Under the pieces are notes generated by a model, which had not been told where the DNA came from, did no database searches, and was given only the letters and a program-made list of their open reading frames with translations. The translations under genes and the position numbers were made by a program. Shown in pieces: positions 1 to 19,459 of a stretch of DNA of 19,459 nt (its first letter is position 1; every line of letters starts with the position of its first letter). Source of the DNA: Lenisia limosa (taxonomy: Eukaryota > Protista > Breviatea); contig LPNZ01006843.1 of the NCBI GenBank assembly GCA_001655205.1, positions 1 through 19,459 on the forward strand. The letters run 5' to 3'.

Positions 1-262
1 AACGTTATTTCGGTCCCCCAGGTTTATCATATTGACCCCTGTCATTTTTGTGGCCCGCCCCGGCACCAGGGTCACCCCCCTGCTTTAATAAGAACTAGCT
101 TGCGCAAACAGAAGCTTCTTGGCTGTGGTTGGCCGTTATCTTCTCTGAACGAACTACGCCCCTTCTTTAGCTTTCTAAAGCTCATTCGGTTATGCCAGAG
201 GCGGATTGCTTTTGCCATTGTGTATTATAATTTCCCGTACTATTACTTTTATTGCCAGATAA

Positions 263-540
263 TGGTTGGTGGTAGTGGTTACATTGTATGCATTTTCATT
301 CTCCAAACAAATCCACAATAATGATAAAAAGGTCAGTACCTTTCCTGTGGTGCAATTATTCAAAAATTGACAGGGATGGCAATGACGCAGATGAAATTTG
401 AAAGAGGTGGCGGCGCAGGAGATCTGGGAAAGTGAAATTCTGCCAAATCTCATACATGAAAGTGCTTCAGGGCCTCCACTAAAATAGCTGCTATTTCCAA
501 ACTTTTACGATTCACGAGATGCCAGCACAATCCCAGCATG
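263..540 (+). pseudogene. Possible decayed or unresolved coding fragment
   Basis: Frame WLVVVVTLYAFSFSKQIHNNDKK, a 42-nt GT-AG intron (332-373), then GWQ*RR*NLKEVAAQEIWESEILPNLIHESASGPPLK*LLFP with TGA at 383 and 392 and TAG at 485. No family recognised. Confidence 0.25.
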
Positions 541-806
541 ATCCAACACCAGGACAATCCAACAATCCAACAGCAGGTAGCTGGATTTCGTCATTGTTGG
601 GTACATCGTTTCGTTATTTTATTTGCTTGGGTGCTTGGACGATTAAAATGAATACGTTATCAATTCCCATATCAAAGAATATTTCATATTGTTGTGAATA
701 AGTAGATGTAATAACAAGCACCCTGTGTTGTGACATTTTGAACTTGTTTTGAACACAAATTGATAAACTGACACATTGATATCATAGAAGCTCAAAACAA
801 CAAATC

Positions 807-3151
807 CTATCTTTTGTGGATTTGAAGAGTCTTCGTATCAACAATCCTTGAAATGTATTTTGATCGACAAACTGCACATTTGGGTGAATGCGAAAACTCT
901 ACATGGTAAATGATACCGTATTGAAAGATAATAGTTACACTGTACTTCTCACTTTCTAAAGATGTGATGCAACTGTCATGATAAACATGCCCACAAGATA
1001 AGATGATGATCTGAATGATGAAATTGACGTCAGAGTACCCTTACCTTTCGTTTTGATATTAGCAATGAAGATAGGCAAATAGGACAGTTATTAAAACCGC
1101 GCTCCTGAGCCTAAAGAGGTCAGCCACACAATGATGTGGCATACAGTTTCTGCCAAAGAACACCAATTCGTTTGTCGTTCCAAAATCTGGTCATCGAGAG
1201 AGCTGGGCAATTAAGCAACACACAAGCCAACCTGAAAATGGCTCTTGCTGCAGTAAGGTCACTATCAAGTTGAGCACACAGCTGGTCAACTTCACATTCC
1301 CTTTTGTCTGCCTCCTTCACCAGCGCTGTTGCTCCGGTGGACACCTAATTGTAAATTATATATTGCGACTCTTTACCTTGCCTGCGGCAACTCTCATTCG
1401 TAATTCCCTGCTTTTTGGCGGGTTGACTTTCCACAATTGAAGAACCCAAACTCTGGCCTGATACCCCCTGTGATGGTAAAATAAGCGCCTAACCCCATCG
1501 GAAGATTTGAAATTTGAAAATGGAAGGAAATCCTTGAATTCCACATTAAAACGTGTATGACCGTCAAAATCTCATTCTTTGAGTCATTTCACAATGTTCA
1601 CTATCATTGTTCACATTGCGTAGTGATGTGATTCCTCATATCCACTCGTGATAATTGAACGACAAGTCTCAGATACTCTGATACACTCGGGGTGAACCCT
1701 CGGGTTATCTTATTTCATCAGTTCGACTTTGAAAGTCGGTCCTAACATAATATCATCATCGGTCCTAACATAATATCATCATAGCGCAGGTGGATAATTA
1801 TGGGAAAACATTACTTCGCATACCTAAACAACTTCTGAATCATAACAGCAGCAGACCATTTCATCCCAACTAATCCATCTGAAATCACTCTTTTCTATGG
1901 GTATGAGAAAAAGTCATACATTATCCAAATCACTGTTCCATACCTGGTAGTTTTGATGTCGACAAATAGGGCAAGCAGGAACCTATTGCGACATAACTAG
2001 GACATTGGGAAAAAATTGAAATGGTAAGATTACACCACTTACTTGAACACATTTCTCAAACGCGGAAATACAAGCCATGTGCACAGTATGGGAGCATGAC
2101 AAAAGAGCCTAGTGGTAAGGGTGAAGGGAGTAACTAGCTACTTGTTTCTTGGAACCGAGACTATCATGGCAGATGATGCAATCGTGCAAGGAATCCCCCC
2201 TGCTTCTTGAAACGGTTAACACCTGAAGATGAGCGGCACTCTTAAGATGCGTTTTATTGAAAATATTTTGAAATATCGTACCATATTCCAATCAGATTGG
2301 CTCATAGATGCTGTAGACTTCAACCCTGGTACCAATCCCATTCGCTGGGCTAACGGTTACATAAAATATCTGTATTACCTACCCAGAGTCTGCTGATTCG
2401 CATTGAAGTGAAGGCCCGTATCTGTGAACCCACCTCCCCACGGGATATCCTTGTTCAAAACAAGAGGTAAAACCTACACATGACAAACGTTACATCGACA
2501 ACAAACCTTGATTCTAACACTTGCTGGGGGTTTGAGTTCCGTTTCCACTTCAGGTACCTTGGTAGACGCAATCTTCTCTGACCCTCTCCTCATAGCTGAT
2601 GCACCACTTTTAGAAAGGGGTCCCGGAGGGGTCGAAGAAGCACGTTCACTTCGTGTTTCCGTTTTCTACAACTCTGTAATCAGGAAACCAAACACAAATA
2701 TAAACGATGGTGTTCCTTTTAAGCAAGTAATCGCCCTAACCCAGGCTGACTTTGAGTGAAGCTGATGAGGTTAATGCTCTTCTAACCCTTCGATCTGATG
2801 TCCTAGCAATCTATCAGGACAGACAAACAGTCCCTACCTCGTCACACTTGCCACTTTCGGCACATTCATTCCACCGAGCTTTCGGACATAGTGATCTTGA
2901 AGAGCTGCTGCCTGGGTACTCAGATGCCTAACCAGCTGATATTTACAGCCTCGAGTATCAACAACATATTTGCTGCATTTTGACTATCAATAGCATATTT
3001 ATAGCCTCGAGTATCATTGAGTATCAACAACATATTTGCAGCATTGAGTCCATACATTCGCAGTAAAGCATACCGTCAGAATTTCAGTGGACTTCTCGTC
3101 AGCAACTCCTTTGGTCCGCTTTGGGGTCATTGGGGAGGGACGTCGGCTCAT
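807..3151 (-). CDS. RNF32: RING finger protein 32 (two RING domains plus IQ-like motif), about 16 exons
   Basis: The spliced translation matches recalled RNF32 motifs in order: EILT|AAALQDH, TLAQRMGLV, SQSDWNM|VLTVSRSRGDSLHDCIICHDSLGSKKQ|ALLSCSHTVHMACISAFEKCVQ|VPACPICRHQNYQ|KRVISDG...MIQKLFR|GYQARVW, NNCPICLSSL...IILSCGHVYHDSCITSLEKFSHSPKCAVCRSKY. Phase-consistent GT-AG introns: 2912-3073, 2474-2506, 2350-2382, 2223-2281, 2109-2141, 1983-2042, 1895-1943, 1468-1823, 1345-1376, 1203-1231, 1111-1144, 1011-1044, 899-952. ATG at 3151, TAG at 809-807. Splicing between about 2675 and 2845 is unresolved. Confidence 0.9.
1736..1781. repeat. Perfect 23-nt tandem duplication in an RNF32 intron
   Basis: tcggtcctaacataatatcatca occurs at 1736-1758 and 1759-1781. 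Confidence 0.95.
2939..3045. repeat. Imperfect ~41-nt duplication in RNF32 intron 1
   Basis: atatttacagcctcgagtatcaacaacatatttgctgcatt (2939-2979) recurs at 2995-3045 with two substitutions and a 10-nt insertion (ttgagtatca). Confidence 0.9.
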
Positions 3152-3652
3152 GGCCTGAGGGTGGGTTGGATAGGTTGTTTAGTGGGGGGGGGGGCAATCT
3201 ATTTGATTTCACCAAACCCAAAAATACAACAACCAAACTAACTGGAATCAGGAAAGGAGTAAAACCAAAAAAAATAGACTATAAAGACTTTAAATTGGAC
3301 TTTTTCTCCGTCATTGTAGAGGTATCATGAAAACCTTAATCAAGGATTTACATGAATCCAAGGCTTTTTACTTCAAATCAAATGGGTTCTCATCACTTTG
3401 ACAAAGGCTCGGCAAAGGAATGTGTGATGACGTTGCGAGCCTGTCCAGATTCAAACCTGGACCAGTGTCCCCCATTCTATACACCTCCTAGATTCAGATT
3501 CATTCATCTATTCATCTATTCAGCATCTATTAGTATATTAGTAATTAAGTATATTTTTTTATTTATAATATACTCTTTATATGAAAATAAAAAACATTAA
3601 AAGTGTATTCTGCTTTACTCCTACGACAGAACTTTCTGTGTAATAAAAGGAT
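3152..3652. promoter_or_regulatory. Putative bidirectional promoter between RNF32 and HAP2
   Basis: 501 nt separate the divergent ATGs (3151 minus, 3653 plus). The region contains a G11 run (3184-3194), ATTC/ATCT short repeats (about 3490-3532) and an AT-rich block (about 3530-3610). Promoter function is inferred. Confidence 0.5.
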
Positions 3653-6600
3653 ATGAGTCAGGATTATCACGCCTTATCGTTCTTACTAGTAGTATTATTG
3701 TTTACTGGAGTTATTGGAACCTGGACAGTACAAAAATGTAGCGACTCGCCCACCTTGGAGTGAGTACTATGACAGTAAGCAGCCCTAACCTGTTTAGCTG
3801 TGTGGATGGCAACAAATTGGTGTTTCAGCAAGATATTAGTTCAAATAACGCGGAAATTCAGCTTGCAGAAGGTTGGCTTGGGCATTTTGATGATTTGACT
3901 TTCTCCAATCTGATAGGGGAATCCAATCTTCTTAGTTCCAGTTTTGTTCTGCTCCTCCTCCACCACGATTTGACGACCCAGGAACCTTTGTTAATGACAA
4001 TGATGGGCTGAAATGGATGGTTACATCAGATATCACCATCCACATCGCCCTCAACGGAAATGTCAAATACTGTATGTGAGGATTTTTTTGGACTTGGGGA
4101 ACAGGTATTGATCTTGTCTTTGGGAAACACTGATATTTTAAATCGGATATAGCAGGCATTAACAAATGGTGTTTTAATTAATCACAAACATGGGCATTTA
4201 TGTTGTGGAGCCCGACGACTCGTTCTGCCGCCTTGCGTTCTGCTCAAGTTCCTATCTTCCTTAACTTCTGATCTGCCAACTTATTATGCGCTAAAAATTC
4301 AATTATTGGCTTTAATTCTGCATTTCTACGTATTCTCTAATTCTCTGATGGTATATCCGCTCAAACCTCAATAACGGCCCACATAATGTCTATTCCCCTT
4401 TCCTCCTTGTACATACCAATAACCCGTTTAAGTAGTATGGTCTTTGTTTTTTGTATCTTCAGACAATAAAACTATTTTTTTATTATTTTGTGGTGTACCA
4501 TCCATGTTTGTTGTTTCTACATTCCATTCCCACCAACACCGCCAGACTTGTCAACGCGACAAATCGACACAGTCAACGAAGCTGAAGTCGTCAGAGTACA
4601 GAACTCCGCAATCTCGTGGGCTGGCTTTATTATTAGTGTAGCCTGGCTAGCTAGTATTTGTTCAATATAAGCATCAATGTTGAAGTGTTCCCTTGGAACT
4701 TGAGGGAGTCAAGGAATTCCGAAGTAACTGTTTAGGACTTGTCCTTCATCATCCATCTGTTGCACCGAAAGCGGTCTCAAATGGTGGGCTTGGTTCTTCT
4801 GTTTGCGTCCACATTTGCTCTATTTTTTTTACTTGTTGCGTTTTGCTTCCACCACATTAATCTGTTCTCTTCAGCAGTGACCCTTTTAGGGAGTACAAAC
4901 TAAACATGGGTGACGAATATGGGGTGTACATATTCCAAAATGCCCTGTTTGAGTTCTCCTCCACTGTCACCGTCAACACTTTCACCCACCAAATGAGCCT
5001 TGAAGCCACCTCGAGCCACTCCAATATGTCCTCGGTGGTAAGAGGGGGCTAAATGTCGATTTTCTTAACCAAAAACGACCACATAACATAGCGTTCTTAT
5101 TTTTTTCAAGTACTGGGAAGTTTCCTACATCATCATAACTACAATGTGAAACATTGAGTAGTGCGAGACAGTCTAACAATGAAGGAGTTCTACACAGGAG
5201 ACATAGGTCAGAATGACATCAAATTACTATGGATGAAGGGCTCTCAATCACAAGGTATGAGAGAGCAGTCGAGAGTGATATTAATTCTGTGGTGCTTATA
5301 CTTTAGCCTTCTTTGTCGAGCGGCGATATATGGGAACTGAAGTCAACAAACTTGGGGTCTCCACGGCCGGCTTTCTGTCTTCAGCAAGTTGCCAAAAGGA
5401 TAACTTTGCCCTTTCCAGGATTCTCACTGATGATGGAATGAAACTAGTATGTCACCCCTTGGCTCCTTCTGACCTTGCAGATGTCCGATTTTCTGACAAA
5501 TAAACCTGAAGACCTTTTCCTTGGCTGCTCTCGAGCCGAATCAGAGCCAGATAGCTTTATTGTATGAGGGAAATGTTGCATTTTTCAAACTACTATCAGC
5601 CAAGGTCCTCCACCTCACAACCCAGGGTTTAAGCTGCAGCCATGGCTCAGGTATCTTAAAGGCACGCATAGACGTTTCCCCTATCACCCCCCTCGTCGCG
5701 TCCTATGGGATACCTATCTTTACGGTTTGCGCAAACGCTCTGGAAGAATTTCTTGAGAACAGGGTCTGACTTTAAAGCTTGCCAATCTAGAGGAGTTCCA
5801 ACTTGGACGAACTGCGGCATCAGTTATTGTTAGCATTGAAAACGACTCTGTTTTTGATGGTGAGCGGGGGTAAAGGCCTACTTACGCGATGTACAGTGAC
5901 CAACTTCTTTCCCCTAGTTTACAAATGAACGGGCCTTCCAATATGGCTGACTCTTCAGACGACTTTGTAGTTGCAGTGTCGGAGTGTTCAGTGTCAGTTC
6001 GCACTTCTGCAGCACAAACGGTTTGTTCAATACCAAAAATAGTGATGATTTCACCAAATTACTTCCTTGTAGCTTTTTGGATTTGGGTGTTTGATTTGCG
6101 TAGGTCCATCTTGCTGCTGGTAAAAAGACCACAACTCCCCTTTTCTTCAATGTTGTTGTGATGGGTGCTCCTCAGGTAAGAAACCCTAAAGGTGCTTTGA
6201 TAACTTGGCAGAAGGCCATAGAGCCGAGCTTCTACTGTACCCTAACAGCCTCAACTGGCACAAAAGTGGGATCGGGGTGGTACCATTCCACAACACCCAT
6301 CACCTGTTGAAGCTGACCAAAAAGGTGATGGCCACAGTGACGGCAACCNNNNNNNNNNTATTGAGTCGCACGAGGCCTATGTCGCCGCCGCCATCGCCGA
6401 GCCGACTGCCGATGGCTCCTGCGCTACCGGATAGTGGGGGGTAGTTCTCAAAAGCTAGGGAAGCTGTCTTGGACATATGATTAAAAATCGAAGAGCAGGT
6501 TTCTTGTGTGAATAATAATTCTTAAATCAAATCCCTACCGAGTGAAAGCGGCAAAATTAGTGTTAATCAAATTATTATAACACACCAAAAGGAATAGCGT

Positions 6601-8029
6601 ACTTTGGACATCCACGACAAATACTCTCACCTTTGTTACTCCTCCCCAAGTGTATACGCCGACGACACTGGTACTTGCACTTGCTCCAGTCGATGCGCGA
6701 GTTGCGAGGAAGGCTTCATTTCAACAGAAACAAACTGCGCAACACCCAATCAAGGCGTAGGCATTGCAATTGTGTCGTTTCATTTGAGGCTTTGCTGAAC
6801 ACACCTTTACTACTCTGCCTCACTTTTCAGATAACCCTCAACGACAATGTGAGTCTCATCGTCAACTGGTCGCAGGGTCAATTTGCCATTCTCTCACTTC
6901 TCAGGTGACATCGCTTTTACCGGATCTGCAGAAGACAAACTCGACTACTTCCATAAATTTCACCAGCGATGTCCCCAGTGTCTCCTCTACAAGTGTATGA
7001 TGGTTTTGCTGTACTATTACTTAGCAGATTATGTGGCATTGATCTGCAATTCACCCGTTCGTACAGAAGTAATCTATTTAGGGTATCTTGTTGGCTGGAC
7101 TTGTGCTCGTGACAATCATGCTCTTCGTAAGGGGGAGGGGGGTTTGTTCAATTCAAGGAAGAAAATGGATTCCAGATTTTCTTCCAAGAACTAAGATTGT
7201 AGCGGCCTAAATGCGCGGCAAGAAAGCCGAAGAAGAAGTTCTCGATCCATGACGCTTTCCTTGAGTTCATGGAGTCTCAATCCCAAACACCAAGTACGCT
7301 GTCTTATTTGAATTCAACTCACTTTTTCAGTTCAAACCCCAATGAAGAAAAAGAAGGGTTTCACGGAACCCCAATTTGAACAATCTTACCAGGACTCCGT
7401 CTCTCAGAGGGACTTGGTTGGTACCATCGACTTTGAAAGAGCCCCTTGGTTGTCTCATTTCTTAGGAATTCATGAACCAAACCCTCTACAATCTGCGTAA
7501 TAAAGGAATGTACCAAGTACAGGTCCAAAAGCCAAGTGGGGAGGTTCAAATCTTCTTTTTACTCGCCATTTTATAACTATGATGAAATTTTGGACTTTTC
7601 CAAGACTAACTCTCTAGTTGCCAACCTGCCTCCAGCTTCACCATATGTTAGTCCGGGACTGAGAGGGTAATAAGTGTCTGATGTTACAGACGCCAAACTT
7701 CCATAAAGGCCAGGCTCCAGAAAGGCCCTCCAAGTCGGCGTGCAAGGTACTTACCGGACTTCTTGACATGGCTGACCCTTCAGATCACTCCTCGAATGCA
7801 AGGTCCTGACAGCAGCTTCTCGTCCTTTGGGAAAACAAAACGAAAACTTGACCTGACCCCATCAGTTTGGAGGATTGTTTCTATTCACACCAAAAAGAGT
7901 CCTCTAACAGCACAGGGCCTTCCAACAGCTAACGACAATATGGCTGCAGTGAACGCTATCACTGCACATGACCCCAGAATGCTTCAAATGGTGAGTTTTG
8001 AGACCTCTTTTATCAACAAAGAGGGTTGA
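3653..8029 (+). CDS. HAP2: Divergent HAP2/GCS1-like gamete fusogen (class II fusexin), more than 20 exons, crossing an assembly gap
   Basis: Signal peptide MSQDYHALSFLLVVLLFTGVIG, followed by segments collinear with recalled HAP2 motifs: VQKCSDSPTLDCVDGNKLVF; TVNEAEVV; TCPSSSICC; GDEYGVYIFQNALFEFSSTV; FQVLGSF..NEFY; FFVERRYMGTEVNKLGVSTAGF (compare MLLERVRFTLDGLECNKIGVGYEAF); domain III SVIVSIEN..DFVVAVSECS..FYCTLTASTGTKLTKKVMATVTAT; Cys-rich GTCTCSSRCASC; TM GILLAGLVLVTIMLF (7082-7126); basic tail RPKCAARKPKKK. Introns include 3760-3797, 3872-3981, 4072-4545, 4784-4874, 5038-5091, 5146-5184, 5255-5306, 5447-5480, 5562-5604, 5725-5762, 5860-5958, 6021-6103, 6176-6211, 6266-6312, 7127-7202. The stop is either TAA at 7498-7500 or, with further splicing, TGA at 8027-8029. 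Confidence 0.78.
4190..4459 (-). mobile_element. Degenerate Ty1/copia-like gag (UBN2/Retrotran_gag_2-like) fragment inside HAP2 intron 3
   Basis: A 90-codon frame TILLKRVIGMYKEERGIDIMWAVIEV*ADIPSEN*RIRRNAELKPIIEFLAHNKLADQKLRKIG resembles the copia gag pattern MW..L...EL.....EFL......QLR.IG. It has three stops (4363, 4339, 4246) and no frameshift. Confidence 0.5.
6349..6358. other. Assembly gap (10 N) inside HAP2, just after domain III
   Basis: Run of N. Confidence 0.99.
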
Positions 8030-8349
8030 TTATACATAGTATATATGATATATTATATAAATAATGGAGATGACACCCTAGGGTGGACTCAGTGACACAG
8101 GCCTTGCCGGGAACAATGAGGCCAACCTTCTCATGGACCCAGGTTTTAACATGGTATGAGCTCCTACAGCTGGTTTAGGCTTTAACTGTTTAGGGCGTTG
8201 ATTACCCCACCCACCTGACAGACATGTCAGGATTATGACACGTAATGTATCTATTGGTTGTGTATTAGTGTTTCTTAGGTTTTTCTTAGAGTATTTATTT
8301 AATTATAACCCCCCCCCCTTTTTTTTTTTTCAAAGAAATCAAAAAAATA

Positions 8350-8445
8350 NNNNNNNNNNNNNNNNNNNNNNNNNNNNNNNNNNNNNNNNNNNNNNNNNNN
8401 NNNNNNNNNNNNNNNNNNNNNNNNNNNNNNNNNNNNNNNNNNNNN
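8350..8445. other. Assembly gap (96 N)
   Basis: Run of N. Confidence 0.99.
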
Positions 8446-8499
8446 ACCGCCGCCTGTGCACTGTAACAGTCGTTGTTTGGAGTCAGACACGCTCGACTG

Positions 8500-8714
8500 T
8501 AAAGCAGCAGCATCTATGATGGTGATGGGACATTGATGATGGATGAGAACTTCAGCCACAAACTATATGAAGGTCAGCTTTGGGAATGATTTGGTGTAAG
8601 GAGTGGCGAATACAGCCAATGAGATTTGGTCTCCTCTATGGCTTATTGTCATTTTGCTAGCCAAGTGTCTTCCGCTCTTGGTTGTGCTAAAAGGTCAGGC
8701 ATTGGACCTCTGAA
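8500..8714 (+). CDS. Possible terminal exons of a gene whose 5' part lies in the gap
   Basis: SSSIYDGDGTLMMDENFSHKLYE, a 28-nt GT-AG intron, then GVANTANEIWSPLWLIVILLAKCLPLLVVLKGQALDL* with a hydrophobic C-terminal stretch. No family recognised. Confidence 0.25.
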
Positions 8715-8798
8715 ATGAAAAAAAAAAAGAAGGCATGCATCACCGTCAAGTTGGAATGATGAGAGGTATTATACACTATATGAACGCAACAATCACAG

Positions 8799-8852
8799 TT
8801 GATCCTAATTTAAGAGTGTGTGAGCATGCCCCTTGGTCCTAATTTAAAAGTG
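8799..8852. repeat. Imperfect 20-nt direct repeat, 34-nt period
   Basis: ttgatcctaatttaagagtg (8799-8818) versus ttggtcctaatttaaaagtg (8833-8852), 18 of 20 identical. Confidence 0.8.
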
Positions 8853-11380
8853 CCTTAATATGCGTTTCCTTATTGGTCCTCCCACCTCCGAGCCAGATAA
8901 TGGGTACTTTATAACCTCAAGCGGAGGATCCGTTAGCTGCGTAAATCGAGGGGCTGCGAAGTAAATAAGAATGTCATGCGCCATATGTTTATGAAATCGA
9001 CCAAGGAGCCCAGCCGACCGAGGTTCGGAATGGACCGTCAGATTGTTCCACTTTTTGGGACATCCTGGCAAGTTGCAACCACTGATGTGATAACCGAATC
9101 TTTCAGTTGCACGCTGGCGCGCAACTGTCGCGTCAGAACAGCAATATTAATCAACAAGGGGATAGACCTGACCAAACAAGACCCAATCTTTCGTCCACTG
9201 TTGAGCCTTCATATCCAGACGGGTTGCTGGTTTTGCCTCAGCCATAGCCATGCTGTCTTTTCGGATGCTTGCTGCGGCAGGTGCTCTTATAGTCTTTACT
9301 GTGTTGGGTAAGTACTCAGCTAATAAGTTTCTCAATTCGATTGACGAAGTTCAGATCGTTCTGCAGCCATATTTTCGATATCGTTTGGTAAAGGTAGGAC
9401 GGATTCACCTGAAATTGTAACTCAAAAACATGTGAAGTACAGTAATACCACATACCACTACCCACTCTCAGTTGAAGCCCTATTCGGACCGTTCTCTGAA
9501 GAAGGTCGCAATGTGCTGCTTATCGAATCCTCTGAAGCAATGAAGGCTGAAATACAATGGGAAAAAGACTGCAAAATACCCCCCCCCCCACTGTGAACCG
9601 TTTCTGTAGTTTCTGAGGAAGATGTGGCGACGACCTAATGATTAGACCCGTTGGGTGTTTACAAACATTGACATTCAGGCGAGTTTAGCTTCAGCCGCAG
9701 CTCTTCGTCTCCTCTCACTGGAACGCTCGTTTCTGAGGTTGTTAAAAGTGTGTCGGTGGTTTCACCTCTCTTCTTCAAGCCTTTCATTTTCTTCTAGAAG
9801 CGCGGCTTTAAGAATCTAAAAACGTGAGACCTTGCAGAATTGGCCCACAACAGACAAGCATTGAAACAAACCTCATTTTGCCTTTTCGAGTCAGCAAATT
9901 TATCCTGTAGCCTGTTGTATTGGCCTCTCTCGTGTTCTAACGCGATAAAAGAAGGCCACTTAAAAGACGATGGATAAATATGAGAAAATTGGAACAACAA
10001 ATTTTATCCAGTCAAAGATGTGAATACCTAACATTGATTGACTGCAGTACCTCCACCTGATAGTTGAGCACACTGAAAAAGGAAGAATCGTGGCCATCTT
10101 CACACACCTGTTTTGCTAGTCAGACAAAGTGGTCCATTATATGCGATGCTGCGTCCCAATGGCTGCGGGGTGAGGACTTGTTGATATTGTAAAATTTTGT
10201 TGTATCACCATAAGAGTGATATAATAGACTGGAACCAACTTTCTGTTCGTCATGCAGCATTCGTGCTTATTCCTCTGCCAATTTCCACTAGGAAGAATTT
10301 TGTTCAACTTCTTCAATTTGAGCTTGGACAACTGCATCCTTTGCGGCCAATTCTATGTCGTAACAATAGAAACCATAAGGTCAAATAAGTTGAAGTCCCA
10401 TCAAAAAGATAGCGATGTCGCCGAAAGAACGATTATTAAGATAATCAATCATTAAATGGAAGAACTATCATGAAATATATATACTACAACGTAGCATTTT
10501 TCTCATCTTTGCTGAGTCTCTCCAGCTCACCTTCCGAGTCGTGTCTCCCATTGCATGTCCATATCTCTGACCTGCATTTCAAAACTCTACAATATCATTG
10601 TTTTAAGTCAATTTGGAAACAAAAGGCTACTGCTAACGGAGATCCCTTATCTCTATTCTCGCTTTCAGTCCCATTGGTCACCTCAATTTCATTCACCATT
10701 GTGTTGAGAGAGTGATACCATCATGCGCCCGCAAAGACCACTCCAGAAGGCTCACTAGCTCCTCTGACCATGCCCAAACCTCGTGGTTAGATCATACATA
10801 TGCTTCCAGAAGAGGATTTGAGTTGATAATGTTGTTTCCGGACGAGTAGAACGAAATACTGTCTTCAAACACAGTTAGATACACCACTCACTTGTCTTAT
10901 AGTTTCGTGAGTGATAATTGAAAGAGAGTCGCGCTGCCGCAAGAGGGCCTCAGATTGCGCCTTCAGATCCCTTCCAGAAAGTTCATCTTCTGGTTTACAA
11001 CAACAACATAATGCTGGGAATTGGCAGCAGCTACCCACAAACACAGGGTCAGCTTTGTGTTGCCAATACTGCAAGTTTGACTGCGTTGTTAGAACCTCAA
11101 CCAAAACAAAGGTCCAATGGACTCCCCATACTGCAAAAGAAGACGGTTGAATTGATGACAAGTTGAGGAGAGTCATGCTGGGGCCGTCATAGTCGTCCGG
11201 GCCTCGAGGCGTCACATATGCCTTTTCAACGGGAGGTGATGCGGGGCGGATGGAGAGTGGTACTCAGTGAGCTGGAAGAAAGGAAAGGAAGCTGGCTGTT
11301 GGAGGACTTGTTCGGGAACCTTGACGGCTTTGTTAACGGAATGTAAGTGCTGTTTATCGTGGTTCACGTTGTCATCTCAG
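8844..11380 (-). CDS. Multi-exon gene (or two genes, or a pseudogene) of unknown function with a coiled-coil segment
   Basis: Phase-consistent exons FIALEHERGQYNRLQDKFADSKRQNE|ILKAALLEENERLEEER|NERSSERRRRAAAEAKLA joined by introns 9816-9871 (56 nt) and 9733-9765 (33 nt). Further exon-like frames include KPEDELSGRDLKAQSEALLRQRDSL and KAQQWTKDWVLFGQ|LRASVQLKDSV. There is an in-frame TGA at 9677-9675. Both ends are uncertain. Confidence 0.5.
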
Positions 11381-11754
11381 CGTCATATGGAACTTAGCTA
11401 CTTTTGGTAGATTTCGTTTTTTTCTCAATTTAATACTAATATTATCTTAGTTAGAGTATAATAAAATCAAGATAGTGGAAGACTGGGAACTTGCGTCTCA
11501 AATATTAGATCAATTAGATCCTTTTAGTGAACTTTTCTCGTTTTTTCGACCTTTTGAGGCTTCTAATAACTTTAGTATTGACGTATAAAAGTATTTATAC
11601 TTTAGCTGGTGGTTCATTTGACCCGAGGCCCGGGGTGGCGGGAAAAATTTTCGTTCTTCTGTCGTGTCTATATATATTTAGATGATTTAGCTGGGTGGCA
11701 CAGGTCCCCCCCCCCTCCACCCCAACATTCCAGGGTTGTGTGGCGAGGAGCAAA

Positions 11755-14700
11755 ATGGCTCTCATGAGGCATGGTAAACAGGATGTCAGGCCAGAAGGAG
11801 TGTTCACGAAGTTCTATGACCATCTTATCACGTAAGCTTGTGTGATGTATGTGATGTATTTATGGATTGGTTATCAGAACATCTACTGATGCTTTAGTGA
11901 TGATGTTGAGAACCACATGCTTCAGTCAAGCTTCTATCGGGTGGGCAAATGAGTATTATTCTGCTAGTTTCCTTTTCCATCTCTGATTTTTTGACTTTTA
12001 GTGTGCATCCTCGAACCTTTGCTCCGGTGAGACGCTTCCATTGGCCTATCCAGCGACTAACAAACATGACATTTTCAAGATGAGGTTTGAAGAAAATGGA
12101 GGGTTCTTTTTTGACTGTGATGGTTTGCCTTATCTTGGCAGGACTGCTGAATTACCTAAGCATCCAAACCAAAAGAAGGTAATAGACACTCTTCAAAAAG
12201 TGAATGGGTCTATTTTCGAGGGTATGAATATACACGCTTTGAGAATCTGTTGAAATCTGATTCTCATCCTGTACTTTTTATAGAGTTAAAAATCAATATT
12301 ATTTGAGAAGATACGGATTCATTTTTTGATTATGAAATCCCTTGATCTGTCTTCAATTTATTGAGCAAATCACATTTATTGCCACTGTAATTTATTTTGT
12401 AGGACCTGAAAATCAAATTTTCTGAAGATGATATGACAACTATCAATGAGTTTTTACCTGTTATCATGCATTCATGTGAGATTTCTGGGAGAAAGAATAT
12501 CTCATTTACACATCTGTAGGTATGTTTTCTTTCCGAGGTTCTGGCCTTGTGTTTAAAGCGAATATCAAGTCTTCTCCTGGTGTCTTCAAATTCTGTTCCT
12601 CCGTATGCCTGGCTCTGCTCTTATACTTATGACACATACGCAGGAATAACTGATCACCTAGGACATTTCCCTGATATATTCCGTGAAGCAGTTTCTTGGG
12701 TTCCTGACCAAACGGGTGCACCACCCTGGGGCAAAAAACAGTTGGAGGGTTTTCCTTGAAATGAGATGCAATTTATTCTTCGCACAATTGACCGTAAATC
12801 AGTATTGAGATACTAATTTGTTAGTGAACGAACGAATTAATTGGCAAAGCCATCCCAATCTGTCTGGGAGTCTTGTGACAACTATCCGTTCAGTTGCTAA
12901 GTTTTTGGCTCATTTGACATTTAAAAGCTTCAAAACTCCACAATTGATAAACTACTTCAAGACTTGGCCGCTACCGTAAGACCTTTTCCTTTTATCACGT
13001 TGCAGCCCCCTAGGCTCCAAGCCTCAGATCGACGTTATCCAAACCCTGGCTAATCCCTTTATTAACTCGGTATTACAGAGGTGATGTTAACTGTCTAGCT
13101 CCGAGGGGATTTTCTTGTTATATGCAGCTTGTTTGTCAAAAACTTATTCGACCTCGACTCTGACCGTGCAAGTAAGGCTCATCAATACGGTTGGCTGAGG
13201 CTTTGGTTCGATTTATCCTTGAACATTTTTTTCTGGTATCGTGTGAAATATGATAAAAATAAATGTATCTAATACTATGATATGTATAGTATACTATATG
13301 ATACCCTGTAATACATGTTGTATATACTACCTCTAATCCTTGTAGGTATGCAGGGGAGGTAATATCATGCCATAATCCAATATCTCTTATAAGCGATGGC
13401 GTGGACGGCTTCGGCCAGATACATCCTTATTTATTTGTCATTGCTATATATGATGATATAAATATATGATATACTACTACCTAGTCTAAAGGTAACCTCG
13501 ACAGGTAATGCGACGGAAGATGAAATTGTTGGACTGTTCTCCCAGTTAATCATTGTTGTAATGTAAGTTTTAGGTGCTGAAAGGACAGTCTCACCATTCT
13601 AGGGAACCGCACAACATCAGAGTGGACTGGCAGTCTATTGTTGGTCAGGAACAAACCAAGGAGCTTTCAATGGTCCCTCTCATTGCGACTGTCTTTGACA
13701 TTTTCCCTGAGATTTTCAGTAGGCTGAGACTGCGATATCGTTCTCTTGCGTAATATAATTGTTCCAGGTGAAGGAAACTTGAACGCAGCGTATGAGGACG
13801 TTTGGACCATGACTGCGGCTCTTACACGCGCAACGCTCAGTGGCGTGGCGTCAGGGAGCGTTGTTAACCCCAACGAGTTTACGACCTTCACCAATTGCCT
13901 CCGAACCTTCATGATTGGTTGGCACAGCGAGGTTCTGCGTTCACATTCAGCCTTCCAAGATGAACATAGCGAGTTGTTGAGAGGAATGTGCATCATGAGT
14001 TCCATGCTGTTTGGCTCTCAATCTGCTAATATCGACTTCACCCACATTTTCTTGACAAAGGAAACTGCAACCCCACGCGATCTGATTTGGATTGCACAGG
14101 AAGCTATGTACTGTATTTGTCTGAAAAATTGGAGCTCAAAAGGGTCTAGTATCGTATATGTTGGCTGGGTGTTTTATATTTGTTGACAGTGTTGGAATAG
14201 CTTTTATTGGTTCAGATCGATTCTCAAGCCTCCGCCATTTGGGTTGAACAGTGGGATAAATTCAAACATTGTTGGAGGGTTAAGATGTGCTTGCTATACA
14301 TCTTTTAATTGGTACATTCACCGTGTAGTGGTTGCCGATGATCAGTTTTACAGCAAATTCACTCCAGTTTCTTTTAGAAATCAAACAAGTAGGGTCTCCT
14401 TCCGCGTTCCTTTTACTGTAGTAGAAGCGAAACAGTCAGTACACGCACATCTTGCATATCACTTCACTTCTGTGGGTGACTGTGATTGGCTTTTTTCAAA
14501 ACGTTACAACAGTCTCTTGTTATAATTATTACACTGGAAGATTATAATGTAGGGCCTTACCCCTGCCTTGAACTACACCAGTGATCTCAATGATAAGGAG
14601 TTGTTCCTCATTCTTACAAACCTCGGGTCAAAGCTTGGTTTGTCTTTTTTGTCAAGCTTATTCCTTTAATGAGTTAGTTCCATTTCAGTCAAAACTCTTG

Positions 14701-17316
14701 AAAATGAATCCGTTAAAGGATTGTATTGCCACCCTTGCCAACAACCCTCTTTTTGTCGTAGGTTCACCCTTGTCAGTAATATCGCCAGAACGCTTGTACC
14801 CATTCCATTACCAAGCTAATTGAAACAACCCTTGTCGCCTGCGAAAATGAGTACCTCACCAACCACATTGTTGCAGGTAACAGTTTGGACATTGCAGCAA
14901 CTGTGCGAGAGTTTCAGTTTATTCGCGAACCCCAAACACTCTCCGTAAGATCTCAGTGGTCATGACATTTCAGGTTGATCAAAACGTGGAAGTCTTTGTC
15001 CACTTCAGACGTAAGTTTGACCTTGATTCTTGCGTTATTTTGTTATGTTTGATGTGAGGTCTTATTATGGCTAGACTCTTGTGCTGTTTAAAATTAATTT
15101 GGAGATACTTAGGCGGAGCATTTGACAATTTCAGCTGACATGTACCAGCAGCACTCTGAATGTGCCGTTTCATTCAAAGACCATAGGTGAGCAATTACTA
15201 AACAATTCAAAAAGACTCATAGTAACATTATATAGGTCCGCGTTCCGTGAACTTCATGGCTGGCGTATCAACACTGAGGCGCTCAACCTTTATTTGCCTT
15301 CTGTGAGCGTTCACCACGAGTTTAAAGTCTCTCTTCATCGAATATTCGTTTTGCTTACCTAACCACTGTTTAGTTTGTCATCGCGGCATTGTGCAAAGTA
15401 TGGCAGTCAAACGGTGAGACTTGTCTTTCTTTCATGACTTTGTAGAGAATATTCCCGCATCAATCAATCGACAGAACCTTTCTACCACTATCATCATGGC
15501 GCTTCAGGTAACTTGGGTCCTGTGGTAATGAGCCTTGCTTATCTATGTAGACAATCTTTGACACTGCTCTTCCGTGCACTCTCCACACCCACACGGTTAT
15601 ACCACTGATCCGTGTTTACAGTGGGCCATTATTCTTTTCTGTTATTGTGAATCTTTTCAACATAAACTTGACAATACTTATTACCTTTCTTGTCTCTTAT
15701 GTTGTGACCTTCGTTTATCATTTAAAGGCTTGATTGAGAATTGAGTAATAGTTTAAGTTATTTCCTTCCTCCCTATGGTATCTTCTTCGGGATGCAACCC
15801 TTTTGATATTCATAGTGACACTCCCCCATCGTCGTATTGACTTGAACTACGCGTTAATTGCAATCTTGGCCGACCATCCAAGTGCTACTGTGGCTAAGGG
15901 CGTTGATACCGTCACTCACATTACTCATCTTCATCTCGAATGTTGGCTCCACTTTCTGTTTCAAAAATGCACAATTCGCAAACAGAAAAAGGAAAAACTC
16001 TTTTTTTATTATCTCAAAAGGGATTTCTGCTTTACTGTTTTCAGTGTTCTATCAAGGCCTAATTGGGCCAAATGTACAACAAGACACCAGGCCGCCTAGG
16101 TGGCTCAGTCATGATATGATTGTGGGTATACTTGCACGTATATATTTATAACTATATATCATATACATAATCAGTCAACCTTATAAAAATAGAATAGCTT
16201 GATACTTTGGACGGATTCGATGTTACGAACATTTCTAATTTAGGCCACTTTTGACATTTCAGGTGGTAAACGGATATTCAAAACATGGTGCCGATTTTGT
16301 TGCAAAAGGTTTCATTAAAGCTCTGAACGTGCTTGATACTGAAAGTCTGAGGGGTCTTCTTGTTGTGTTGCATCAAATCTTACCTGCAGGTGATGAGAGC
16401 CTCATGATTGTTCCGATGGTCCAAATGGTGTCGATGGTTACCGAGTGTACCTCGTCTAATTCCGCTATTCCATTTAAACTACTGAACGCTGTGAAATGGA
16501 AGATGTTCCCTGAGAACGTTATCGGTTTGATGAAGCCATGATGTGACATTTTTAGCAAGAAAGATGAATAAATCTTTGAACTATGAGCAATGGGCGTCTC
16601 TCTTCTGCGCCAATATTGTTTGCCTAGACTTTCTTTTGTCTCTTCCTCGATTCTCTGTTACCATTTCAGGAAAACCAAAACATTCCTCACTCTATCTTGG
16701 AGATCATGAAGCATATCAGAAGGGCTTTGTTCAGAGCCGTAATTGAACAGGTTAGTTTGTGGCTTTTCTTTCTTTTTTTGGACAAAAATTAATTTAACAG
16801 ATGAATACTGCAATCAAAAGAATAAACCCAGCCTTTGTTCCCTCGATTAGCTACTTGAGAAACCCTCTCTCCCTGCTTGTCAAAGAAGGAAAGAACCTAC
16901 TAATTATGTTGGAGGGGTGTACACCTTCAAGTAAATCAATCATATTCGATTTAGAAGTTTTATTGTAATAATTCCCCTGTTTAAACGTATTTATATTCTG
17001 TTGTTAATATATTTCATTTTCACCATATTGCCTGAAAATTTTGGATCATAATTCAAGTGTGCACTCTTGGTGAAGAAATGATCATTTCAGGGTATCGGCC
17101 GCAGCTCATGCCATGTGTCCTGAGCTCGATGACATTCGTCTCATTTCACCCCTGACAAAGAAGCCTTTCAACTCTCTTCCGGCAAAAAGAACTGTGAGTG
17201 GCCCTTCTAAAAGGGATGTTATAATTACTGCTCACATTAAAGCGTGATGTGTACGAACCTCCCATCCACTACCAACACTGCTCGATACCCTATTACGACA
17301 GCGGTGCCCCCGCCGA
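11755..17316 (+). CDS. Large intron-rich gene (possibly more than one gene) of unknown family, running into the gap at 17317
   Basis: Starts MALMRHGKQDVRPEGVFTKFYDHLIT|DDVENHMLQSSFYR|CASSNLC (introns 11832-11897, 11941-12001). Many further exons are joined by short GT-AG introns, for example 14945-14973 (29 nt), 15414-15445 (32 nt) and 16525-16555 (31 nt). A long exon at about 13770-14150 reads EGNLNAAYEDVWTMTAAL... and the last visible exon reads RDVYEPPIHYQHCSIPYYDSGAPA. Several junctions are ambiguous. Confidence 0.6.
13379..13428 (+). repeat. Dispersed copy 1 of an exon-derived sequence (reads MAWTASARY), inside an intron of the 11755 gene
   Basis: The core gatggcgtggacggcttcggcca (13395-13417) matches the reverse complement of 17434-17456 at 22 of 23 positions. 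The flanking aatatctcttat is also shared. Confidence 0.85.
15236..16310 (+). other. Ulp1/SENP (peptidase C48)-like domain, apparently lacking the canonical catalytic His and Cys
   Basis: Ordered motifs AFRELHGWRINTEALNLYL (compare L.P..WLNDEIINFYL), TIFDTALPCTL (compare IFNTFF..L), LLIFIVTLPH..LNYALIAI..VAKGVDT (compare IFIPI..NHWSL.VI..YYDS) and VVNGYSKHGADFV (compare QQNGYDCGVFV). Compared by eye only. Confidence 0.4.
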
Positions 17317-17395
17317 NNNNNNNNNNNNNNNNNNNNNNNNNNNNNNNNNNNNNNNNNNNNNNNNNNNNNNNNNNNNNNNNNNNNNNNNNNNNNNN
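17317..17395. other. Assembly gap (79 N)
   Basis: Run of N. Confidence 0.99.
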
Positions 17396-17422
17396 TTTGT
17401 TGCAGTAGAGATGAGACAAAAC

Positions 17423-17526
17423 AAGGTTGTACATGGCCGAAGCCGTCCACACCATCACGCTCATAAGAGATATTGTATTATAGTATAATAATAATATCAA
17501 TTAATTCACCCGATCATTTGCCTTAC
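17423..17526 (-). repeat. Dispersed copy 2 of the same exon-derived sequence (reads VMVWTASAMY), interrupted by a ~30-nt AT-rich insert
   Basis: tggccgaagccgtccacaccatc (17434-17456) and ttcacccgatcatttgccttac (17505-17526) both match the 19374-19443 copy. Confidence 0.85.
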
Positions 17527-17646
17527 AAATCTGTGTACACAGCTTTGTTGGTACGGTGTGTCATTGTATACCTGTATACCCATGGAATGGGGTTTTCGGT
17601 ATCATTTTAAAATGACTTTTTTTTCTTTTCTAGTAGTATAGCTATA

Positions 17647-17670
17647 TAATATATCATATATGATATATTA
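17647..17670. repeat. Perfect 24-nt AT-rich palindrome
   Basis: taatatatcatatatgatatatta is self-complementary and is flanked by ctagtagta (17630-17638) and tactactag (17669-17677). Confidence 0.85.
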
Positions 17671-19459
17671 CTACTAGTAAATATAGTTCAATTTTATTCA
17701 AAATGGGGTCGATGAAACAAACCTCGTATCTGTAACCTCTGGGTTGTGGTAATGGTTTAGTCTGATGGAGAGCCGCAGTACTCCAAAGAGCCACTGAATT
17801 CCAAAACCTCCAAGAAGAAAGCTGGTAAGCCGGTCTGCCCTTGTTCACCTTTCAGCACTCATCAAAATGAAGAAGCAAATCTCTATCCAAAAAGCGGCAT
17901 CAGTTGACAAAAGTGAGTTTTGCTGCTTTCCAATGTCATGCTCCTTTAGGTTGTGAAGATGAACCGGTCAAAAAGTGCGAAAAATGTGGAAAATCCCCTC
18001 CAAAACTGAAAATTTGCAGCAGATGCTTGTTGGGGAGGGGGTCATATGGCATTATGTTCTCTTTGTGAATGAAAACCATGAGGCTCATGTTATAGGAATA
18101 CAAGATACTGTTCAGCTGAGTGTCAGAAGAATGACTAAAGTGACTACAAACGTAAATGTAAAAAATCCTAGTTATGGTAATTCATTGGTAAAAAAGGTAT
18201 TCAAATGCATGGTGTCTAGATTCCATCAGCAAAAATCACATTATCAAATAGTTGGTCAATTCTCAGGTTGTTCCAAAAACGGGCACTCCAAAAGGGGTCG
18301 GTATTCGGGTTCGTTTTCTACTGAACAGCAATCTCTCAGAAATCTGAAATATCAAATTACATCAGTTCATAAAGGTCTACCTTTTTAATCCCTCCGTCAT
18401 TTCAGGAGGGAAGTTGGGAAGAGGGCAAACATGTTTCCTGACCCGACCAATATCCACACTAATTCAGTCATATGCTGGCCTGCAGTAAGCCTACTTATAT
18501 TGATCATTGAAGTGAAGGAATAGAGGAAGGGAGTCCTTGGCAATAGCGCCCTGAAAATTCAGTGATCTAGGCAGTAACCTACCTTTTCCTTGTCTTTGCT
18601 GTTGTCGCATAGCCAGACCGAATCAGCACGTGAAGCTATCTGAAGCGTAATATTGACATCGCACATTTATACCGATTCAAAGTTGTTTTGAGAAGCCTCA
18701 CTGATAGAACGAATCACTGCATGGGGTATATACCTGATGTCTGTTAAAAATTCAGAAGAGCACGGGTTATTGATTCAAACCCGCAACATTGTAATTGCTT
18801 GATTCAATTGTAATTACTTGTCCAGGATTGATTTATCTAACCTGTAGTTTTTTTGAGCTCTAGCGTCAGCACGAGCACATAACTTGTCAACAGGCACCCA
18901 TGGGTAAAAGACCCATGTTTCATAGCCTAGCTGGACAAATTAGCGAGTAACCAAATACCATCTATGATAGACAAGTTAATGTGAAAGCATAATTATATCC
19001 CTTTACCTCCTTCACATGTCTGATAATATAAGTACACCAGGAAATATTGGCTCCCGTAGCCTCCATAATCATGTTGTATTTCTGCCTTGCTAAAAATATG
19101 AATGTCTTAGTTAAGCTGCACAACGTATGTTGCTTCGAAAAAAGATGATTACTTTTCCCACCAGCCACTTCGAGCATCAGTTCCGAGAGGACATCAGCTG
19201 ACTTCCGACAAGTGGAGTAGAGCCTTTGAATGGCTGCAGTGATCTGCAAATTATAAAGGATGATATGAAGTATTTCGCTTTAGTCTAAAAAGACTAATGT
19301 ACCCAGATACTCCTTGTATTCCGTATCGGACTTGCTACTTCAAAAATTCCTCGATAATACATGGGAAATAGACCAAGGAAATCTGGCTGAAGCCGTCCAC
19401 ACCATCACACCAAAAAGATATTTCACCCAATCATTTGCCTTACGATCTATAGATATTTT
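17654..19459 (-). CDS. Multi-exon gene of unknown family; 5' end beyond the window
   Basis: Exons DRKANDWVKYLFGVMVWTASARFPWSISH|ITAAIQRLYSTCRKSADVLSELMLEV (intron 19244-19360), and IASRADSVWLCDNSKDKEK|GAIAKDSLPLFLHFNDQYK|KHVCPLPNFPPEMTEGLKR|FLRDCC with introns 18551-18582 (32 nt) and 18344-18380 (37 nt). Some junctions are unresolved and there is a possible in-frame TGA at 17970-17968. Confidence 0.55.
19374..19443 (-). repeat. Copy 3, the open-frame (probable source) copy of the dispersed sequence
   Basis: tggctgaagccgtccacaccatc (19384-19406) lies in an open exon that ends at a GT donor at 19360. Confidence 0.8.

Follow-up and report, generated by a model that had tools for sequence, protein, structure and literature searches.

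We analysed a 19,459-nucleotide stretch of DNA from the breviate protist Lenisia limosa (assembly GCA_001655205.1, contig LPNZ01006843.1, positions 1 to 19,459; hereafter the window), in which a gene on the plus strand at 3653-7210, with at least 18 exons, has as its most likely product a type I membrane protein whose ectodomain is large. The protein is a probable, very divergent member of the HAP2/GCS1 family of gamete fusogens, and we tentatively read positions 4546-4920, at somewhat below even probability, as three small exons encoding the tip of its domain II. Under the splice model adopted here the tip would be short, with the b-c and the c-d connections both reduced. No gamete fusogen other than HAP2 is broadly conserved; the fusion loops are its point of contact with the egg membrane and, in parasites, a target for transmission-blocking vaccines. 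If the reading is true, a natural HAP2 whose loop is virus-sized and whose disulfides are fewer would set the lower limit for a working domain II tip, would show the appearance of a HAP2 that escapes Pfam, and would bear on why HAP2 seems to be missing from many lineages.

The three exons and the relevant residues of the third are as follows (a slash in a splice site marks the boundary).

4546..4615, plus strand: exon 4, putative strand b, reading ...NEAEVVRVQNSAI, with candidate salt-bridge Glu codons at 4578-4580 and 4584-4586.
4736..4783, plus strand: exon 5, TCPSSSICCTESGLK, with three Cys and a Lys at 4779-4781, ending in the TG of a split Cys codon.
4875..5037, plus strand: exon 6, (C)SDPFREYKLNM followed by GDEYGVYIF (putative strand d) and later strands; donor GTG/GTAAGA.
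4885-4887, 4888-4890 and 4894-4896, plus strand: Phe, Arg and Tyr of exon 6.

Translation confirmed the peptides that an earlier note on this DNA had placed here: TVNEAEVV at 4569-4592 is in frame with codons at 4548+3k, the same frame yields TCPSSSICCTESGLK at 4737-4781, and SDPFREY and GDEYGVY lie at 4876-4896 and 4909-4929. The two donors of equal phase that the note had pointed to were also borne out. With the GT at 4784-4785, the remaining TG joins the C at 4875 to give Cys and no Trp (GLK-C-SDPF), and with the GT at 4793-4794, nine nucleotides further on, TGG TGG GCT (WWA) is added ahead of the same TG/C Cys (GLK-WWA-C-SDPF). The approximately 35 residues reported between TVNEAEVV and GDEYGVY come to 35 under 4546-4615/4736-4783/4875-5037, although the count needs a splice model, which the note had left unspecified.

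Read along this model, the chain begins with ...NEAEVVRVQNSAI, which a Ser with a split codon links to TCPSSSICCTESGLK; a Cys with a split codon then leads to SDPFREYKLNM and GDEYGVYIF. This places 37 residues between the second Glu and the Gly of GDEY and 18 between the CC pair and that Gly. The corresponding distances in Arabidopsis thaliana HAP2 are, by our count, approximately 72 residues (E117 to G190) and approximately 33. The minimal loop proposed earlier is consistent with the best splice model (37 against about 72 Arabidopsis residues), but it depends on that provisional model, in which four of seven Cys are present. Two introns, 4616-4735 and 4784-4874, divide the sequence for the putative strands b, c and d, an arrangement that is supportive and not diagnostic; introns between these strands are consistent in the HAP2 genes of intron-rich genomes (PMC6089408).

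Under the same model the four Cys of the tip are at codons 4740, 4758 and 4761 and at the codon split over 4782-4783 and 4875. Counting three absent from the tip and one from the exon that would hold the ij loop, the total loss of four Cys could be that of two whole disulfides. Candidate salt-bridge residues are the Glu at 4578-4580 or 4584-4586, the Lys at 4779-4781 and the Arg at 4888-4890. The earlier note had found the bridge Arg not obvious, which is right only in part: the loop has an Arg in PFREY (4888-4890) and a Lys in GLK (4779-4781). This Lys is seven residues past the CC pair, one short of the spacing of Arabidopsis R163, and since R185K is fully functional in Chlamydomonas HAP2 (PMC5332557) it could form the bridge.

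At this locus the sequence itself, its phases, the scores of its splice sites and the features of topology were established directly, whereas the exon chain, the HAP2 homology, the strand assignments and the mechanism discussed below are inferred. The chain of exons 1 to 14, hand-built and script-checked, runs in frame and free of stops from the ATG at 3653 to 6265, and four more 3' exons are phase-compatible and end in a transmembrane (TM) segment and a stop. Besides exons 4 to 6, the features of the gene are listed below.

3653..3759, plus strand: exon 1, start codon and signal-peptide-like core ALSFLLVVLLFTGVI, then QKC; donor GGA/GTGAGT.
3798..3871, plus strand: exon 2, CVDGNKLVF...AEIQLAE, in frame and without a stop, its splice choice predicted; donor AAG/GTTGGC.
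3982..4071, plus strand: exon 3, ...ITIHIALNGNVKY; donor ACT/GTATGT at 4072, phase 1.
5111-5145 and 5172-5254, plus strand: exons 7 and 8, with a predicted 26-nucleotide intron between them and a predicted splice choice.
5307..5446, plus strand: exon 9, ...ERRYMGTEVNKLGVSTAGF...C, with one Cys; by-eye counterpart of the HAP2-GCS1 signature (ij loop), without a Pfam match.
5545-5650, 5758-5859, 5959-6041, 6104-6175 and 6212-6265, plus strand: exons 10 to 14, of which exon 14 may extend to 6305.
6349..6358, no strand: assembly gap of 10 N within the gene; exons between approximately 6266 and 6650 are unmodelled.
6651-6756, plus strand: Cys-rich exon with a CxCx3Cx2C module and a further C.
6831-6848, plus strand: micro-exon of 18 nucleotides with strong splice sites on both sides.
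6905-6994, plus strand: Ser/Thr-rich stem exon with the N-glycosylation sequons NST and NFT.
7082..7210, plus strand: last exon, TM segment ILLAGLVLVTIMLFV, short basic tail (RGRG...RK) and TAA stop.

The layout, which HAP2 shares with other proteins, is of the type I membrane kind: a signal-like core with a mean Kyte-Doolittle hydropathy of 2.77 across 15 residues, a long Cys-containing ectodomain, a single TM segment and a basic tail. By eye, exons 10 to 14 appear to be the counterpart of the return to domain I and of domain III. A codon-usage model trained on the exons chose the modelled frame in 10 of 12 exons when each was left out in turn, and the score was highest in exon 6 (+16.2). The window is AT-leaning eukaryotic DNA with a GC content of approximately 0.41 and three N gaps; a ciliate genetic code was tried for it and rejected because TGA stops remain. 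Three of the modelled GT-AG introns are very short (3760-3797, 38 nucleotides; 5146-5171, 26 nucleotides; 6176-6211, 36 nucleotides), and the remaining ones span 52-474 nucleotides. Should the three be genuine, very short introns would form a class of their own in this organism.

The argument for HAP2 itself comes from colinearity. Compared by eye with Arabidopsis HAP2, the protein has 16 short motif matches in the same order, from the N-terminal KC...C..K.V to the YxCT of domain III. The first part of this series consists of KC...C..K.V, AEI..., the Glu-bearing strand, ICC, G-D-aromatic-x-V-aromatic and ER..., and the remainder of NK[IL]GV..[AG]F...C, [FL]E...Q.G..A..I...N, [DE]CS..V, PK...TT..F and YxCT. 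The Arabidopsis numbering used here agrees with that of PMC6089408 at six residues (E117, R163, I171, F172, M175 and I176). On these grounds we regard the gene as probably HAP2, the by-eye comparison serving as a lead only.

A number of findings weigh against the reading of 4546-4920 as a HAP2 tip, and the first group of these concerns splicing. Between exon 3 and exon 6 (4072-4875), generous thresholds admit 16,944 in-frame, stop-free splice paths, some of which omit one or both mini-exons, and generic splice scoring favours omitting exon 4, or exons 4 and 5; its top routes lead from a donor at 4076 (TAT/GTGAGG) to 4875, with Ile at the junction, or to 4736, with Met at the junction. The donors of exons 4 and 5 are both weak. 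For exon 4, the sole donor in frame with the acceptor at 4735 is the weak CTC/GTGGGC at 4616; two GTs that look more likely, at 4590 and 4596, are out of phase with that acceptor. Codon usage is weak for exon 4 (+2.9 against +1.4 for the next frame) and uninformative for exon 5 (-0.8). The family alignment of 38 HAP2 species is anchored on seven invariant Cys, a Glu and an Arg (PMC6089408), and the modelled tip has four of those seven Cys. Finally, the assembly gap at 6349-6358 falls inside the gene, and owing to it part of domain III or of the stem may be missing from the assembly.

Two strong donors stand four nucleotides apart at 4072-4079, ACT/GTATGT (4072) and TAT/GTGAGG (4076). The former is in phase with the acceptor at 4545 and the latter with those at 4735 and 4874, so that in-frame skipping of the tip exons is possible. 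A tandem NAGNAG acceptor (cag/cag) lies at 4872-4877, upstream of exon 6; use of its second AG would remove the Ser after the junction Cys, giving two mRNAs that differ by one Ser codon.

The explanation that best survives as an alternative is that the tip model is wrong or incomplete, either through extra or longer coding pieces in 4072-4875, which would restore a normal-length tip with seven Cys, or through skipping of the mini-exons; the very short loop would then be an artefact of reading raw DNA. This is less probable than our model but deserves serious weight: it accommodates the many in-frame paths and the best-scoring ones that drop exon 4 or both exons, the single weak in-frame donor of exon 4, the weak backing of exons 4 and 5 by codon usage and the absence of three of the seven family-invariant Cys. 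The gene also apparently tolerates introns of 26-38 nucleotides, which enlarge the space of possible splice models. However, no other open piece in 4072-4875 appears to be coding. The 474-nucleotide intron holds no further open piece that is coding-like, codon usage being -5.6 for the open reading frame (ORF) at 4153-4371 and poor for intron read-throughs. Moreover, only in the modelled chain do the strand with the Glu and the CC motif follow each other as expected, and its introns sit at the positions usual for HAP2 genes. The exon chain through the tip is judged marginally likely to be correct. The ORF at 4153-4371 (HLCCGARR...C) had been considered as a hidden loop exon and was rejected for its wrong order, its hydrophobicity and its poor codon usage. 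A crude splice-site dynamic programme was likewise rejected as a gene finder, since it omits exons that have by-eye HAP2 counterparts.

The second group of contrary findings concerns the identity of the gene. Homology searches were made exon by exon, that is with single exons of 15-55 residues. None of the 30 ORF pieces in 3647-8026 searched against Pfam matched PF10699 at E<=10; 10 further ORFs from elsewhere in the window gave sub-threshold matches only, and no significant family was found on the 40 pieces. Six exon ORFs compared with PDB sequences by phmmer returned no HAP2 chain at E<=10, and a HMMER search with exon 9 (5309-5446) against 1.84 billion representative proteins returned two spurious repeat proteins only. 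A word search with 4861-5049 gave no match, two metagenome scans found no relatives, and the ESM Atlas gave no usable match to exon 9. Self-comparison of the window detected no paralogue. PF10699 spans approximately 50 residues with a conserved disulfide pattern. In this HAP2-GCS1 signature, which covers the ij loop, a Gln is described as strictly conserved (PMC5332557). The PF10699-like exon 9 has one Cys instead of two and is without Gln at the expected place, which also speaks against a HAP2 assignment.

Since the HAP2 proteins of Drosophila and Apis are without a detectable pfam10699, and HAP2 has probably diverged past sequence detection in many lineages (PMC6089408), a blank Pfam result is not disqualifying. 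The identification as HAP2 made in the earlier note stays plausible on architecture and by-eye colinearity, while every exon-wise search has come back empty. It is rather unlikely, in our estimate, that the gene is instead a lineage-specific type I membrane protein with no cd/fusion loop, whose likeness to HAP2 motifs is coincidental. Such a protein would fit the blank family, structure-sequence and homologue searches, the unrecognisable PF10699 signature with its disulfide pair and conserved Gln, and a comparison with Arabidopsis HAP2 that was made by eye. It fits less well with many colinear matches in the right order over the whole ectodomain, combined with the right topology, and with a numbering cross-checked against PMC6089408 at six residues; in addition, exons of 15-55 residues have low search power and there are many lineages in which HAP2 is known to elude sequence searches.

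It is improbable that the locus is a HAP2 pseudogene in decay or a copy assembled wrongly, in which the lost Cys and signature would reflect relaxed selection. The absence of the Cys, the Gln and the PF10699 signature could be explained in this way, as could several weak splice sites, the N gap within the gene and the lack of relatives in the homologue and metagenome searches, but the chain is stop-free and phase-consistent over 14 exons and again over the last four, codon usage is coherent among the exons, and an even loss of Cys (three from the tip and one from the ij-like exon) would suit the loss of two disulfides better than random decay.

The earlier note had further proposed that the aromatic character of the tip depends on which of the two donors is spliced. 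Donors were scored with a generic position weight matrix and with a gene-specific one built from the other 12 modelled donors, and percentiles were taken among the 163 GT sites in 3600-6300.

4784..4789, plus strand: main donor ATG/GTGGGC; generic score +1.9 bits, gene-specific +5.0, 98th percentile.
4793..4798, plus strand: candidate alternative donor TTG/GTTCTT; generic score -5.2 bits, gene-specific -7.0, 12th percentile.

The GTTCTT at 4793 has zero consensus matches across +3 to +6, where the modelled donors carry a purine at +3 in 12 of 13 cases and G at +5 in 10 of 13; the modelled donor at 3872 also carries T at +3. Read-through of 4782-4877 has a non-coding codon usage (-12.6). An in-phase GT within 30 nucleotides downstream of a donor has a chance probability of approximately 0.44 (f(GT)=0.057) and is present at 4 of the 13 modelled donors, so that a second donor is no signal by itself. 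The sequence GTKGGCT is common to the donors at 3872-3878, 4616-4622 and 4784-4790; the window has 8 copies against 4.0 expected, a count equalled or exceeded in 8 of 200 shuffles. A related GTGGGA occurs at 6266. Read in frame, GTGGGCT gives WWA at 4784 and WA at 4616, and the Trp pair is thus no more than the donor motif translated.

In the mature mRNA the junction is most likely made from 4784, and the GT at 4793 is a cryptic site. With scores of -5.2 and -7.0 bits against +1.9 and +5.0, the alternatively spliced aromatic tip finds no support, nor does an aromatic tip hinge on donor choice, for the constitutive loop already has Phe and Tyr (PFREY). Use of both donors, with the 4793 isoform inserting a Trp pair (GLK-WWA-C) as a regulated or alternative membrane-insertion surface, is very improbable: both GTs are in phase and each restores the Cys codon, WWA would put three residues between Lys and Cys and so come nearer the four residues that separate the conserved Arg from its next Cys (R163...C168 in Arabidopsis, R185...C190 in Chlamydomonas), splicing changes have been proposed as a route of loop diversification (PMC6089408) and donor 3872 shares the T at +3, but GTTCTT is off-consensus at +3 to +6 and ranks at the 12th percentile of the GT sites of the gene, in-phase GTs so close arise by chance (P 0.44), and WW is the donor motif itself read in frame. 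The splice-dependent Trp tip is the weakest part of the claim.

Returning to the modelled tip with the donor at 4784, one of the closest known systems is A. thaliana HAP2/GCS1 (5OW3; PMC6089408), which shares the type I topology, the by-eye colinear ectodomain blocks, a strand-b Glu, the CC pair, the G-D-aromatic strand d and the introns between b, c and d. The two differ, apart from tip length, in that the Arabidopsis amphipathic helix alphaF (I171, F172, M175 and I176) has no counterpart here, and in the four of seven tip Cys and the lack of a PF10699 match here. Trypanosoma cruzi HAP2 (5OW4; PMC6089408), likened here by its description, comes closest in function to a short tip among the systems described: its membrane surface is made of small non-polar loops, three in number, and has no helix (PMC6089408), although, unlike the present protein, it carries an additional Cys pair within variable region 2 and retains the invariant Cys and Arg. 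Chlamydomonas reinhardtii HAP2 (PMC5332557) offers the same salt-bridge logic (E126-R185, with Lys tolerated) and aromatic loop residues, F192 and W193, that contribute to fusion, but its cd loop has 40 residues, with helix alpha0 and two loops, against 18 here (21 with WWA). The cd loops of viral class II proteins (flavivirus E, alphavirus E1 and Rift Valley fever virus Gc) are of similar size, 10-15 residues in the arboviral ones (PMC5332557); these are, however, viral and not cellular proteins.

In the mechanism that we propose, strand b with its Glu (NEAEVV) would be followed by a much reduced b-c connection (TCPSSS), the CC pair, a c-d connection of 18 residues (TESGLK-C-SDPFREYKLNM) and strand d (GDEYGVYIF). 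Two disulfides and a contact of Glu with Lys or Arg would hold the loop, in which a basic residue (the Lys at 4779-4781 or the Arg at 4888-4890) would be surrounded by exposed Phe, Tyr, Leu and Met. Once triggered, the tip of domain II would insert this short loop into the membrane of the partner gamete, and trimerisation and fold-back would presumably follow, as in the ordinary class II course. Such a tip would make membrane contact with a small loop, as viral class II proteins and T. cruzi HAP2 do, and not with the long loops or the amphipathic helix of algae and flowering plants. The distinct mode of membrane insertion suggested by the earlier note is not needed, short non-polar loops being ordinary for class II proteins and described for T. 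cruzi HAP2 (PMC6089408).

Taken at its fullest, the hypothesis is of a functional HAP2 orthologue without the PF10699 signature and without two disulfides, with a tip approximately half that of Arabidopsis and a virus-sized loop of approximately 18 residues, in which a minor isoform with the Trp pair might occur; as a whole this is doubtful. Such an orthologue would be an example of the HAP2 "diverged beyond sequence detection" that was postulated by Fedry et al. 2018 for lineages that seem to have no HAP2. Variable tip lengths, differing insertion motifs and large deletions in animal and protozoan HAP2 have already been published, the deletions in the tip region being known from Porifera, Cnidaria, Annelida and protozoa, as has the proposal that the loops can diversify by splicing changes, made possible by the introns between b, c and d (PMC6089408). 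The possible novelty lies in how far the reduction goes, with four of seven Cys and no detectable signature.

Elsewhere in the window, long open frames on the plus strand at 13728-14183, 14780-14962 and 16239-16538 have a codon usage like that of the HAP2-like gene and may be exons of a second gene. They gave no Pfam family, homologue or Atlas neighbour (word search with 13728-14183; ESM Atlas with the ORF at 13728). Rfam and tRNA scans of the window returned no match. A stretch at 17871-18065 on the plus strand weakly resembles the beginning of a MYND zinc finger, below the threshold (E 0.13). A dispersed repeat of approximately 75 nucleotides occurs at 13360-13432 (minus strand), 17419-17493 (plus strand) and 19381-19422, its copies being 81-88% identical, and one of the copies adjoins the N gap at 17317-17395.

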